A DNA stretch of 64,000 nucleotides from Chrysemys picta bellii (Eukaryota): NCBI RefSeq assembly GCF_011386835.1, contig NC_088807.1, forward strand, positions 19,344,001-19,408,000, read 5' to 3'. The notes beneath the pieces were generated by a model. It did not search any database and was not told where the DNA came from. It was given only the letters and a program-made list of their open reading frames with translations. The position numbers and the translations under genes are program-made. Of the stretch, positions 57,408-63,063 are shown piece after piece (the first letter of the stretch is position 1; each line of letters begins with the position of its first letter).

Positions 57408-57720
57408 ATGATGATCAAGCTAAGCCGGAAGACGCGCTCGCTGCTGGCGCTGGCCTTGAACTCGCTGGCCCTCTGCTTCGCGGTGTCGGCCTTCGCCACC
57501 AGCTACTGGTGCGAGGGGACGCACAAGGTGGTCAAGCCGCCGTGCCTGTCGGCCATCAGGAAGGGCAACTGCGTGCCCGTCGGGGCCAACGAGACGGAGG
57601 CCGGGAACGCCACCCTGGACCCCAATGTGGTGCAGTACATCTGGGAAACGGGCGAGGACAAGTACGCCTTCCGGTACTTCCACACCGGCTTCTGGCTCTC
57701 CTGTGAGGAGCACCACGGAG
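57408..57720 (+). CDS. GSG1-like: GSG1-family (claudin/PMP22/TARP-like) gene exon 1
   Basis: MMIKLSRKTRSLLALALNSLALCFAVSAFATSYWCEGTHKVVKPPC...YIWETGEDKYAFRYFHTGFWLSCEE; GSG1 signatures WCEGT, WETGED and FHTGxWxSCEE; donor |gtagga. Confidence 0.95.
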
Positions 57721-58117
57721 GTAGGAACAGCCCCCGCGCCCCACCCCAGAGGTGGCTGCATCTCAGTGTCGGGCGAGGGGTCCCCGTATACCAGCCCCCG
57801 CGCCCCACCCCCAGAGGTGGCTGCATCTCAGTGTCGGGCGAGGGGTCCCCGTATACCAGCCCCCGCGCCCCACCCCAGAGGTGGCTGCATCCCAGTGTCG
57901 GGCGAGGGGTCCTTATATACCCAGCCCCTGCGCCCCACCCCAGAGGTGGTCACATCTCAGTGTCGGGCGAGGGGTCCCCTGATGTGGCCGCGTCTCAGCC
58001 CACCGCCAAGGTAAACCCAATAAAGATTTGGTGGGGGGGTTGAACTGTGCCCCCTCCGTCCCGCTGATCTCACACTCTGTCCTTTTCTCTCTCCCTTACC
58101 CCGCCCCCCCCCCCCAG

Positions 58118-58167
58118 ACGAGATCTGTCGCAGTTTCATAGAGCTGCCCCCCGAGTCGGAGAAAGAG
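58118..58167 (+). CDS. GSG1-like: GSG1-family exon 2 (DEICRSFIELPPESEKE); one G apparently missing at the junction
   Basis: cccag|...|gtgagc; CRSFI motif. One added G restores the frame into GVLWLS. Confidence 0.85.
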
Positions 58168-58299
58168 GTGAGCGGCCGGACAGACGGACAAAGCCGGGAC
58201 GGGACTTTCCCCTCCTGCCAGCCAAGGCCCTCGCCAGAGGCATGTGGTGGGCCCAGCTTGGGAGCTCCCCCATGGGCACCCCCAGGATTGGGGCTCCAG

Positions 58300-58640
58300 C
58301 TGGCAGCCCCCCCACTGACACACACACCAGCAGCTCCCGACACACACACATCCAGCAGCCCTCCCACTGACACACACACCAGCAGCCCTCCCACTGACAC
58401 ACACACCAGCAGCCCCTGACACACACACATCCAGCAGCCCCCCCCCACTGACACACACACCAGCAGCCCCCGATACACACACCCCAGCAGCCCCCCCCAC
58501 TGACACACACACCCCCAGCAGCCCCCCCCGATACACACACCACCCCAGCAGCCCCCCCACTGACACACACCCCAGCAGCCCCCCCCACTGACACACACAC
58601 ACCAGCAGCCCCCCGATACACACACCCAGCAGCCCCCGTC
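58300..58640. repeat. CCCCCCACTGACACACACACCCAGCAGC minisatellite
   Basis: Direct tandem units. Confidence 0.85.
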
Positions 58641-58736
58641 CCGTCTGGGGCAGAGCAGGGCTGAGAGGGAGGCAGCGGGAGGCAGGTCCGGGGGGCGGGA
58701 TGGGGGGGCTGTGCTGACCGTGGGGTGCCCCCCCAG

Positions 58737-58890
58737 GGGTGCTGTGGCTGTCGGTGGCGTCGGAGTTCCTGTACATCGTCCTGCTCAGCGTCGGCTTCGT
58801 GCTCATGGGGACTGGACGCCACCTGCTACGCAGACTTCATCGCCGGGCTCAAGATCAACGCCTTCGCCGCGGTGATCACCGTGCTGTCGG
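58737..58890 (+). CDS. GSG1-like: GSG1-family exon 3 ([51 protein letters not shown]); one extra base at ~58808
   Basis: 154 nt versus a frame-preserving 153; TM2 and TM3 with the GLKxNAFAAV motif. Confidence 0.9.
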
Positions 58891-59544: not shown

Positions 59545-60372
59545 TCACAGGTCGCGCCCACTCTTGGCCCCGTGTGGTCTGTGGGGGGAACCCCCTTCAG
59601 TGAGACAGCCCTTCTCGGGGGTCCCACTTTCTCCCGGGGTTAAGCCCCTCCACCTCTTGGAGCCGCACCTCTCTGAGCCTTAGCATGTCTGTCTCTCGCC
59701 GTGGGCCCTCAGGGAGTCCACTTACTCTGGACCCCCAGGACCTCCACTCCCCGAAGGGGATGATGCAACCCTGTTCTCTAGACTGGAGTGACACTCAGCC
59801 AGTATAAAACAGGAGGGTTTATTGAGCGTTGAACACAGCACAGGAAACTCTCAGGGCCCTCAGGCCTGGCCTCCCTCAGCCCAGCACATCCCAGTCTCCC
59901 CTGCAGCCAGGTGGGCTCTGCCTGCTCCCCCTCTCCAGCCCCGACCCCCCTGCTTCCCAGCTGGGCATCTGATATCACCAGCCCCAAGGCCTGCCTCTGT
60001 CCATTGTCTTCTCTTCAGGTAAACAGGGTCCCCTGGGCCTCCTCTCCCCTCTTCTGTCCTCTGGCTGGAACCGGCTGGTCAGGTCACCGGGGTTCTCTCT
60101 TCACAGCCCATTGTCCTCCCACTGGCCAGAACCGGCTGTGACTCTTGAGCTGGGTCTCCAGGTCGTCAGGTCACCAGTCGCTGGGGTATCCATCCTCCAG
60201 GCCATTGGCTGGGGTCCCAAGTTCCCTCTCCGGTTCTCTGTAGCAACAAACTCCCTCTCCCCTCCCCTCGTTAAACTAGTAACCCCCAGGGAAACTGAGT
60301 CCCACTCCCTCTGCATGCAACCCACTGGAAAAACACGAAAAAAAAAACAAGAAAATCCCCCACTTCGTCACA
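59545..60372 (-). mobile_element. Probable solo LTR (turtle Gypsy-type)
   Basis: Right end CTTCGTCACA (TGTGACGAAG on -); recalled similarity to turtle LTRs; left boundary uncertain. Confidence 0.5.
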
Positions 60373-60388
60373 GGCTCTCTGTCCCCAG

Positions 60389-60500
60389 GCCTCCTGGGCA
60401 TGGTGGCCCACATGATGTACATGACCGTCTTCCAGGTGGCTGTCAACCTGGGGCCCAAGGACTGGAGACCCCAGACCTGGTTTTACGGCTGGTCCTTCGG
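60389..60500 (+). CDS. GSG1-like: GSG1-family exon 4 ([37 protein letters not shown])
   Basis: 112 nt, ccccag|...|gtgagt; family-diagnostic [11 protein letters not shown] and LGPxDWRP. Confidence 0.97.
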
Positions 60501-60829
60501 GTGAGTGGGTGAGTGACCCTGGGGACATGGGGCCTTTCCCTTCTAGGGGGCGCCAGCTCCCATCTGGCCCCCAAGTGCCCTGCTGTTCCCCCTGTTCTGG
60601 GGACGCACGGTGGAGTCCATCCTGGCCCTTTGGAAGAGCCCCGGAGATGTTGGACAGATAGGTGCATGGCTGGGGAGGGGCAGGCCTGGGGGACGGACAG
60701 ACTGAGGGACAGAGGGACGTGGGGCGGCTGGGTGTAAGGGTGGGTGGGAAATACATGGGCCGATGAGAGGATGACTAGCTGGCTGGCTGGGAAGGGAATG
60801 GCGGAAGAGCTGCTGGATGGGAAGATTGC

Positions 60830-62560
60830 TAAGTGGTGGATGGTGGGTGGGTGCGGATGGCCGAGTAGAGAGCTGGGTGGGTGGGTGGGTAGGTAGCTGG
60901 GTGGGTGGATGGATGGTTGAGNNNNNNNNNNNNNNNNNNNNNNNNNNNNNNNNNNNNNNNNNNNNNNNNNNNNNNNNNNNNNNNNNNNNNNNNNNNNNNN
61001 NNNNNNNNNNNNNNNNNNNNNNNNNNNNNNNNNNNNNNNNNNNNNNNNNNNNNNNNNNNNNNNNNNNNNNNNNNNNNNNNNNNNNNNNNNNNNNNNNNNN
61101 NNNNNNNNNNNNNNNNNNGGGTGGACGGATGGATGGGTGGGTAGGTGGGTCCGTGGATGGATGGGTAGCTGGGTTGGTGGGTAGGTCGGTGGATGGACGG
61201 ATGGATGGGTGGGTGGATGGGTAGCTGGGTGGGTGGGTGGATGGGAGGTAGGTCAGTGGGTGGATGGGTGGGTGGGTAGGTAGCTGGGTCGGTGGGTGGA
61301 TGGGTAGATGGGTCGGTGGGTGGGTGGGTGGATGGGTCGGTAGGTAGGTCGGTGGGTGGATGGATGGGTAGGTAGGTCGGTGGGTGGATGGATGGGTGGG
61401 TGGGTAGGTAGGTGAGTGGGTGGATGGATGGATGGGTGGGTAGGTGGGTCCGTGGATGGATGGGTAGCTGGGTTGGTGGGTAGGTCGGTGGATGGACGGA
61501 TGGATGGGTGGGTGGATGGGTAGCTGGGTGGGTGGGTGGATGGGAGGTAGGTCAGTGGGTGGATGGGTGGGTGGGTAGGTAGCTGGGTCGGTGGGTAGGT
61601 CGGTGGGTGGATGAGTAGATGGGTGGATGGGTAGGTAGGTAGGNNNNNNNNNNNNNNNNNNNNNNNNNNNNNNNNNNNNNNNNNNNNNNNNNNNNNNNNN
61701 NNNNNNNNNNNNNNNNNNNNNNNNNNNNNNNNNNNNNNNNNNNNNNNNNNNNNNNNNNNNNNNNNNNNNNNNNNNNNNNNNNNNNNNNNNNNNNNNNNNN
61801 NNNNNNNNNNNNNNNNNNNNNNNNNNNNNNNNNNNNNNNNNNNNNNNNNNNNNNNNNNNNNNNNNNNNNNNNNNNNNNNNNNNNNNNNNNNNNNNNNNNN
61901 NNNNNNNNNNNNNNNNNNNNNNNNNNNNNNNNNNNNNNNNNNNNNNNNNNNNNNNNNNNNNNNNNNNNNNNNNNNNNNNNNNNNNNNNNNNNNNNNNNNN
62001 NNNNNNNNNNNNNNNNNNNNNNNNNNNNNNNNNNNNNNNNNNNNNNNNNNNNNNNNNNNNNNNNNNNNNNNNNNNNNNNNNNNNNNNNNNNNNNNNNNNN
62101 NNNNNNNNNNNNNNNNNNNNNNNNNNNNNNNNNNNNNNATGGATGGGTGGGTAGGTAGCTGGGTTAGTCGGTGGGTGGATGGGTAGCTGGGTGGGTGGAT
62201 AGGTCGGTGGATGGATGGATGGGTGGGTAGGTAGGTCAGTGGGTGGGTGGATGGGTGGGTAGGTGGGTAGGTAGGTGGACGGATGGATGGATGGGTTGGT
62301 AGGTAGGTAGGTGGGTGGATGGGTAGCTGGGTGGGTGGGTGGATGGGAGGTAGGTCAGTGGGTGGATGGGTGGGTGGGTAGGTAGCTGGGTCGGTGGGTG
62401 GATGGGTAGATGGGTCGGTGGGTAGGTCGGTGGGTGGATGGGTGGGTAGGTAGATTAGTGGGTGTACGGATGGATGGGTGGGTAGGTAGCTGGGTCGGTC
62501 GGTCGGTGGGTGGATGGGTAGCTGGGTGGGTGGATAGGTCGGTGGATGGACGGACAGATG
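60830..62560. repeat. (GGAT/GGGT/AGGT)n compound microsatellite with N gaps
   Basis: Directly visible. Confidence 0.9.
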
Positions 62561-62735
62561 GAAGTTATGTGGAGGGGGCAGCAGGTACCTGGCTGTAGGG
62601 AAGAGGCTGGGGGTGGATAGGAAGAGGTGGGGAGCACAGGGCTGGGTAGTTGGGGAGCGTGGGGGGCTGTGGCTGGGGCGTACCACTCCCTGGCCCTTGG
62701 GCTCACCCCACTTCCCCCCCCCACGCTGCCCGCAG

Positions 62736-63063
62736 CATGGCCTGGCTCTCGTTCACGCTCTGCATGTCGGCCGCGGTGCTGACCCTCAACACCTACACCA
62801 AGACCCTGCTGGAGTTCCAGCACCGCCGGCGGATCTGCGAGCAGCAGAGCCAGCGCGGGCCGCGCTCCCCCAGCCTGGCGCCCGAATTCCAGCGCTTCCT
62901 GTGGGACAAGTACGTCTTCAGCGTCAGTGACTCGCTGGACTTCTCCCCTGGCCGCTCCCGCCCCACCGCTGGGGGGCGCAAGGGCCGCGGGGGGGGCTAC
63001 GCCGGCCTGGCCGGGGGGCGCTGCGGGGATGCCGGCGACCCAGACGATGGCGAACCCTGCTAG
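62736..63063 (+). CDS. GSG1-like: GSG1-family exon 5 (MAWLSFTLCMSAAVLTLNTYTKTLLEFQHRRR...DDGEPC*)
   Basis: cgcag|C, phase-compatible with exon 4; TM4 AWLSFTxCM and NTYTKxxLEF motifs; stop TAG at 63061-63063. Confidence 0.95.

Follow-up and report, generated by a model that had tools for sequence, protein, structure and literature searches.

A probable fourth member of the vertebrate GSG1 family near visinin in the painted turtle

Relation to the described members of the family

The best match to the gene treated here is GSG1L, an auxiliary subunit of AMPA-type glutamate receptors that is represented in the structures 5WEK, 5VHX and 7RYZ. GSG1L has been credited with two paralogues in a paper whose alignment figure includes, as vertebrates, human and zebrafish only (PMC7653359). 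The GSG1 proteins have also been put into one CACNG-GSG1 family with the TARPs, the transmembrane AMPA-receptor regulatory proteins CACNG2-8 (Ramos-Vicente and Bayes 2020, PMC7653359). Here, we describe a five-exon gene of the GSG1 family at positions 57408-63063 (+ strand) of a 64,000-nucleotide stretch of the Chrysemys picta bellii genome (contig NC_088807.1, forward-strand positions 19,344,001 to 19,408,000), which is referred to as the window throughout. Most probably, the locus represents in the painted turtle a fourth member of the family that is ancient among vertebrates and distinct from GSG1, GSG1L and GSG1L2; it is here called clade D. The gene as such is already annotated, as RefSeq titles the product of the locus 'LOW QUALITY PROTEIN: germ cell-specific gene 1-like protein'. 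Both RefSeq and sets derived from Ensembl list it, labelled either as GSG1L or with a clone name, and what is gained is a further member of an established family. The literature searches yielded no publication that names a fourth GSG1-family member, and searches for the names GSG1L3 and GSG1L4 gave text artefacts only.

The predicted product has about 316-320 residues, a claudin fold and four membrane helices. Exon 1 on its own matches the Pfam family GSG-1 (PF07803) with E = 3.2e-37 and 127 bits at a cut-off of 27, which is far beyond chance, and the hydropathy profile has four hydrophobic segments. AlphaFold was run on the RefSeq-corrected protein XP_065427439.1 (P0305), not on the raw window frame. 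The model has a pLDDT (predicted local distance difference test) of 73, exceeding 90 in the helices, which cover residues 7-30, 117-152, 157-195 and 208-252 and are accompanied by a five-stranded sheet. Foldseek returned GSG1L chains in complex with GluA2 as the first matches to this model (7RYZ, 7RZ9, 5VHX, 5WEK), followed by TARPs in AMPA-receptor complexes, and the TM-score with 5vhx_E was 0.81 on the target. A phmmer search with the Mauremys orthologue led to GSG1L in GluA2 complexes as well (E = 1.3e-89, residues 3-251).

GSG1L, closest in both sequence and fold, has in common with clade D the Pfam family, the four-helix claudin fold with an extracellular beta sheet, the paired extracellular cysteines and the YGWSF motif. 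A conserved Y-x-YGWSF motif has been described to precede the fourth transmembrane helix (TM4) (Ramos-Vicente and Bayes 2020, PMC7653359). Exon 4 of the window gene encodes TWFYGWSF, and Y207 and W209 are invariant among 39 aligned sequences. Identity between the painted-turtle protein and turtle GSG1L is unevenly distributed, amounting to 84% in TM3, 77% in TM2, 72% in the second extracellular loop, 63% in TM4, 55% in the first extracellular loop and 20% in the cytoplasmic tail. This last value reflects an unrelated tail, which in clade D ends acidic with ...E-x-C. Unlike GSG1L, which has belonged to another clade since before the split of sharks and bony vertebrates, clade D also carries the specific residues H39, L47-S48, F95 and K198, the latter giving GPKDW in place of GPEDW.

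The other described proteins are further removed. GSG1L2 forms the clade nearest to D in the careful tree, yet its overall identity to D is only 44-49%. It has been kept in therians, where D was not found among annotated proteins; turtles carry both genes, and orthology of the two is rejected by the test described below. GSG1 has the same family assignment and fold and an acidic, cysteine-ending C-terminus (Canis ...EEELC). It is nevertheless the most distant from D of the three named members (41% identity for Canis GSG1) and lies with GSG1L across the unrooted tree. The TARPs belong to the same fold class and supplied the second tier of fold matches, but they are only 15-20% identical to D, which does not have the TARP-type C-terminal PDZ ligand.

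A profile-free HMMER scan of 1.8 billion representatives yielded 503 family members, the names of the other branches being taken from cluster look-ups. For local alignments and trees, spliced rows were made from the window, with an X at each junction and break; database searches were run with single exons, one stop-free open reading frame (ORF) or database proteins. The careful tree (IQ-TREE, 49 rows, LG+C20, unrooted) is given with support as bootstrap/SH-aLRT, the latter being the Shimodaira-Hasegawa-like approximate likelihood ratio test. It contains a GSG1 clade (99/95) with dog, bird and fishes; a GSG1L clade (92/95) with cow, flatback turtle, lizard and database representatives; and a GSG1L2 clade (100/99) with seal, desman, frogs, the turtles Chelonoidis and Gopherus, teleosts and a skate. 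Clade D (99/98) comprises two sharks, a ray, six ray-finned fishes, coelacanth, lungfish, frog, newt, skink, tuatara, platypus, two turtles and the window gene, and this grouping was recovered in two further trees. In a FastTree run with fragments, the ray Narcine had come to lie beside mammalian GSG1L2; this placement was rejected as a long-branch effect, and the careful tree puts Narcine into D with the sharks (100/99).

Cartilaginous fish, ray-finned fish and tetrapods are found within each of GSG1L2 and D, and clade D is older than the split between sharks and bony vertebrates. Turtles carry all of GSG1L (Natator P0121), a GSG1L2-clade gene (Chelonoidis P0311, Gopherus P0139) and D, and Chelonoidis abingdonii has its GSG1L2-clade gene (P0311) alongside a D gene (P0002). 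The Natator GSG1L groups with mammalian GSG1L (Bos, Desmodus), and the window gene stands outside that group. Joining amniote D and mammalian GSG1L2 in one clade costs 47.9 log-likelihood units and is rejected by the approximately unbiased (AU) test (p-AU = 0.00085). The earlier note on this DNA had proposed that the gene is no orthologue of GSG1, GSG1L or GSG1L2, and the chondrichthyan, ray-finned and lobe-finned members of the fourth clade agree with this. Direct orthology to one of the three, which that note had named as the outcome that would speak against its proposal, emerged neither from the tree and the AU test nor from the separate turtle GSG1L and GSG1L2 genes.

Seven alignment columns are diagnostic for clade D (H39, L47, S48, F95, H102, K198 and R242), and all of them are present in both the window translation and P0305. 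The clearest is the lysine of GPKDW, part of the second extracellular loop; the 16 sequences from other clades have E at this position, as in GPEDW, except for one with P. The acidic C-terminus ending in E-x-C is retained in D from shark to turtle.

A word search with exon 1 found near-identical turtle proteins (98% identity for the Mauremys orthologue) and orthologues in squamates, tuatara, coelacanth, lungfish, amphibians, platypus and sharks. The matches from tetrapods to sharks are all titled 'germ cell-specific gene 1-like protein', and several of those in fishes are called si:ch211-232m10.6 or si:ch211-149k23.9. The tail of the window gene (FQRFLWDKYVFSVSDSLDF...DDGEPC) is conserved among tetrapod orthologues, and a search with the tail alone gave matches solely in turtles, squamates, tuatara, amphibians, lungfish and platypus. 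With the platypus protein as the query, D proteins of tetrapods came first (E = 1e-115 to 1e-92), then ostrich (E = 1e-89). They were followed by a few fish and reptile proteins together with emu (E = 6e-85) and then, from about 1e-84, by the therian GSG1L series amid fish and squamate proteins. A human GSG1L protein (P0350) was among the matches as well and was left aside. A quick tree placed ostrich and emu within amniote D, and opossum, vole, sloth and bat within GSG1L.

Three word searches of annotated proteins gave no D member in marsupials or placentals. The gene had been supposed lost in mammals; this holds for the therians in these searches, but not for the platypus, whose protein P0024 falls inside amniote D. 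Judged from the sequences recovered, clade D has been kept in sharks, ray-finned fishes, coelacanth, lungfish, amphibians, lepidosaurs, turtles, ostrich, emu and platypus. P0321 (ostrich) and P0323 (emu), the bird members, lie on contigs of only 299 kb and 363 kb, respectively. Gly, Ala, Arg and Pro abound in both, and a composition artefact is the probable reason why they group with platypus. No D member of other birds or of crocodilians surfaced in the searches run, and the scarcity of such matches is better explained by GC-rich 'hidden' bird genes than by loss.

A fourth conserved member with an age reaching from shark to platypus changes the family count of three. As D and GSG1L go under one name, many non-mammalian genomes list two different 'GSG1L' genes. 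Since the title 'germ cell-specific gene 1-like protein' covers both, expression comparisons across species that are based on names can mix them.

Proposed role of the clade D protein

The clade D protein may be an auxiliary subunit that binds, as GSG1L does, to the membrane domain of AMPA- or kainate-type glutamate receptors, and it would do so chiefly in OFF bipolar cells of the retina. Neto1 is an auxiliary subunit of kainate receptors. The zebrafish gene si:ch211-232m10.6 belongs, with neto1, to a marker gene set for OFF bipolar cells (preprint, bioRxiv 10.1101/2024.12.06.627071). Homology and this expression lead suggest a glutamate-receptor auxiliary role in OFF bipolar cells as the most likely mechanism, although its chances of being right are put at somewhat under even. 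A more specific proposal is less likely than not: D would be a hitherto undescribed ionotropic glutamate-receptor auxiliary subunit, specialised for the synapse between cones and OFF bipolar cells. It would thus be an ancestral component that therians dropped as mammals dropped the cone gene visinin, and its GPKDW loop might give it an effect on gating unlike that of GSG1L. No mention of the D gene was found in the supplements of a vertebrate retina atlas (PMC10719112) or in the text of a lamprey retina paper, and a literature search on GSG1L and OFF bipolar cells gave nothing useful.

Another explanation, which falls short of even chances but is still a real possibility, accepts a genuine fourth paralogue without glutamate-receptor action. 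The protein might then resemble claudins as a component of junctions or, like GSG1 according to reports, be an adaptor in the endoplasmic reticulum or in trafficking. GSG1L is the sole member of the family known as an AMPA-receptor subunit. The cytoplasmic tail of D is its own, and its second extracellular loop has K instead of E, which reverses the charge there. TM3 and TM4 are the receptor-contacting helices in solved GSG1L complexes. Their 84% and 63% identity to turtle GSG1L therefore counts against a role away from receptors, as does the appearance of the zebrafish orthologue next to neto1 among the OFF bipolar markers. GSG1, of the same family, has been reported to bind and act on a testis poly(A) polymerase rather than on receptors, and GSG1L2 is without a known role (PMC7653359). 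The auxiliary-subunit proposal makes D a candidate receptor modulator that can be tested in animals used for retinal physiology, namely zebrafish, Xenopus, turtle and lizard.

Gene model and frame slips

All introns of the gene begin with GT and end with AG. Exon 1 (57408..57720, + strand, as are the others) starts with the ATG at 57408, encodes TM1 and most of the first extracellular loop with the WCEGTHKVVKPPCLS motif and two N-x-T sites, and ends at a GT donor. Exon 2 (58118..58167; DEICRSFIELPPESEKE) has 50 nt and a canonical GT donor. TM2, the intracellular loop and the start of TM3 are encoded by exon 3 (58737..58890), which was aligned to P0001, P0296, P0297 and P0304, and the remainder of TM3 and the second extracellular loop by exon 4 (60389..60500). 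Exon 5 (62736..63063) contributes TM4 and the cytoplasmic tail with the motif FLWDKYVFSVS and the acidic end ...DDGEPC before the stop codon TAG. The five exons, four transmembrane helices and distinct tail that had been read from the letters are confirmed by splice sites, hydropathy, AlphaFold helices and alignment. The ORF, previously called complete, does have its five exons but is complete only if two frame slips are set aside. Outside these slips, every residue of the window protein equals that of P0305.

The first slip concerns the junction of exons 2 and 3. The 50-nt exon 2 with its GT donor ends in phase 0, and exon 3 (GG GTG CTG...) needs phase 1. The other turtles have ESEK-GVLW at this place; the window reads GAGAAAG followed by AG and then gtgagc of the intron, and this final AG (58166-58167) has no counterpart in the other turtles' proteins. 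The second slip lies within exon 3, where four G are found at 58807-58810 (ATGGGGACTGGAC) and three would be expected from ATG GGA CTG GAC, which encodes the M-G-L-D common to all orthologues. The conserved reading of exon 3 runs in frame 3 to 58807 and in frame 1 from 58809. Together, the two slips sum to a multiple of three and leave only about 23 residues, the second membrane helix, out of frame. The earlier note had described two repairable 1-nt indels; there are indeed two disturbances of the frame, with an extra G in exon 3, but the one between exons 2 and 3 is a 2-nt difference. A RefSeq-type model omits one base and lets exon 2 continue to 58174, so that the donor is GC at 58175 and the product gains the residues EVS. 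One real extra codon combined with two miscounted G runs is an equally simple reading.

Assembly errors in G-rich runs are more likely than real lesions as the source of both slips, because the slip in exon 3 is a homopolymer miscount in a G run and because there is no other damage or stop codon in a protein that, outside the slips, is 97% identical to that of Mauremys. A further reason comes from visinin, whose exon 1 also lies in the window and is off by one base in a run of C. This exon (35915-35950) is split over two frames, as TTCTTCCCAACTCG contains three C (35932-35934) and the reading FFPNSDP needs four. Sauropsids have been reported to be without recoverin (Lamb & Hunt, PMC6170504), which makes a dead visinin unlikely, and a sequencing error is the likeliest cause of the slip in the C run. 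Coding frames in this GC-rich part of the assembly thus probably carry one-base run errors.

A real clade D of which the painted-turtle copy has recently been disabled, or is present as a null allele, would make the slips true mutations that scramble the second membrane helix. Both slips do stand in the assembly, RefSeq flags its model as LOW QUALITY PROTEIN, and the 2-nt difference (AG) at exon 2 is no plain homopolymer miscount. Set against these points are conserved frames free of stop codons and further damage, the identity to Mauremys given above, a mere four residue differences from Malaclemys, splice sites that are all intact, the same kind of one-base run error in the adjacent visinin and the exact cancellation of the two slips, so that we regard a disabled copy as improbable. 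A turtle orthologue of GSG1L2 or GSG1L that has merely moved to a new chromosomal place is scarcely credible: the database name shared with GSG1L, the overall identity of about 53-55% to GSG1L proteins (77-84% in TM2 and TM3) and the proximity of the GSG1L2 clade in the careful tree speak for it, but turtles have separate GSG1L (P0121) and GSG1L2-clade (P0311, P0139) genes, with D and the latter side by side in Chelonoidis, both D and GSG1L2 include cartilaginous fish, ray-finned fishes and tetrapods, and the AU test rejects the union of amniote D with mammalian GSG1L2 (p = 0.00085).

For the preferred interpretation, an intact fourth family member with a receptor-related role, several points weigh on the other side in addition to the report on GSG1 and poly(A) polymerase cited above. 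The slips may be real, in which case the individual or the species has a damaged copy. The low-quality flag was set by RefSeq itself on its own model of the gene, and homopolymer error explains the disturbance between exons 2 and 3 only if a real extra codon is assumed as well. The trees are unrooted and without an invertebrate outgroup, and the placement of the cyclostomes (lamprey, hagfish) is not settled in them. The therian absence is based on annotated proteins rather than on genome searches.

Intron 4 contains two assembly gaps (60922..61118 and 61644..62138) within one (GGGT/GGAT)n array that spans 60874-62550 and flanks each gap on both sides. The first gap begins 421 nt after the end of exon 4, and the second is 597 nt away from exon 5. 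At the junction of the two exons, a Gly codon is split into GG and C, and the resulting ...YGWSF-G-MAWLSF... aligns with six other turtle proteins. As no residue is missing there, no coding sequence is hidden in the gaps.

Exon 4 has an alternative AG 15 nt upstream (exon start 60374) that would add the five residues SLSPG in the middle of TM3. This acceptor is used in the 321-aa RefSeq models of Malaclemys and Mauremys and may represent a minor isoform or an annotation slip. In Mauremys mutica, two clade D RefSeq proteins, P0001 (316 aa) and P0294 (321 aa), differ by the SLSPG insert and are assigned to contigs of equal length; they may be isoforms of one gene or the products of two gene copies. 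In intron 3, at 58993..59281 (+), the terminal ~33 nt of exon 3 and the donor (AACGCCTTCGCCGCGGTGATCACCGTGCTGTCGG followed by GTAC) recur as three degenerate copies in tandem. The copies are 62-73% alike and spaced by 96-157 nt, and the GT is still present in two of them.

Genomic neighbourhood and origin

The gene had been predicted to lie beside visinin, RPL28 and UBE2S, and within the window it does. It is located about 7.4 kb downstream of a promoter region common to RPL28 and a second gene, the end of visinin is about 15 kb away, and UBE2S lies further upstream. At 9.4-11.1 kb, where SHISA7 had been expected, four ORFs have no Pfam match, and the Shisa cysteine motif was not found in the window.

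In the unrooted topology, GSG1 and GSG1L are separated from GSG1L2 and D (AB versus CD), which is the shape expected after two rounds of genome duplication. In the careful tree, two cyclostome sequences join GSG1L2 and D in one group (90/80), and the GSG1 and GSG1L clades of that tree have no shark or ray among the members identified by name. In human, 12p13 (GSG1), 16p (GSG1L), 17p13 (GSG1L2) and 19q13 are in addition the sites of two gene quartets, EMP1/EMP2/PMP22/EMP3 and GRIN2B/A/C/D, and of the trio SHISA9/6/7. We take GSG1L2 to adjoin RCVRN at human 17p13, and GSG1L2 and D presumably each lie beside one member of the recoverin/visinin pair. Visinin and recoverin have been assigned to different rows of one paralogon (Lamb & Hunt, PMC6170504). 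D and GSG1L2 could have arisen from one precursor in the early vertebrate genome duplications, paralleling the visinin/recoverin pair alongside. Such an origin, suggested by the unrooted topology and by the chromosome positions given above, is well motivated, though not proven.

Three further features of the window may be recorded. The stretch 9418-11102 (+), in which the 3' end of SHISA7 had been placed, contains Pro-rich ORFs in three frames (e.g. ...MKMNYERYGEAAQHPRRVMSQEHILSDGY...); if they belong to one exon, this exon would also carry frame slips. Between RPL28 and the GSG1-family gene, 50684-51025 (+) resembles a first exon, with a signal-peptide-like start followed by a heptad-like part (MGLWGALVLLALLGGGG...LQEAIRELQSENAQLQGRVQNL), and this putative exon had no Pfam match. 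Finally, a tandem array with up to 83% G+C occupies 46383-50240, between the RPL28 exon at 46687-47337 (- strand) and the promoter region near 49.8-50 kb. It is open for 700-1200 codons in several frames on both strands, with readings rich in Gly and Arg or in Pro.

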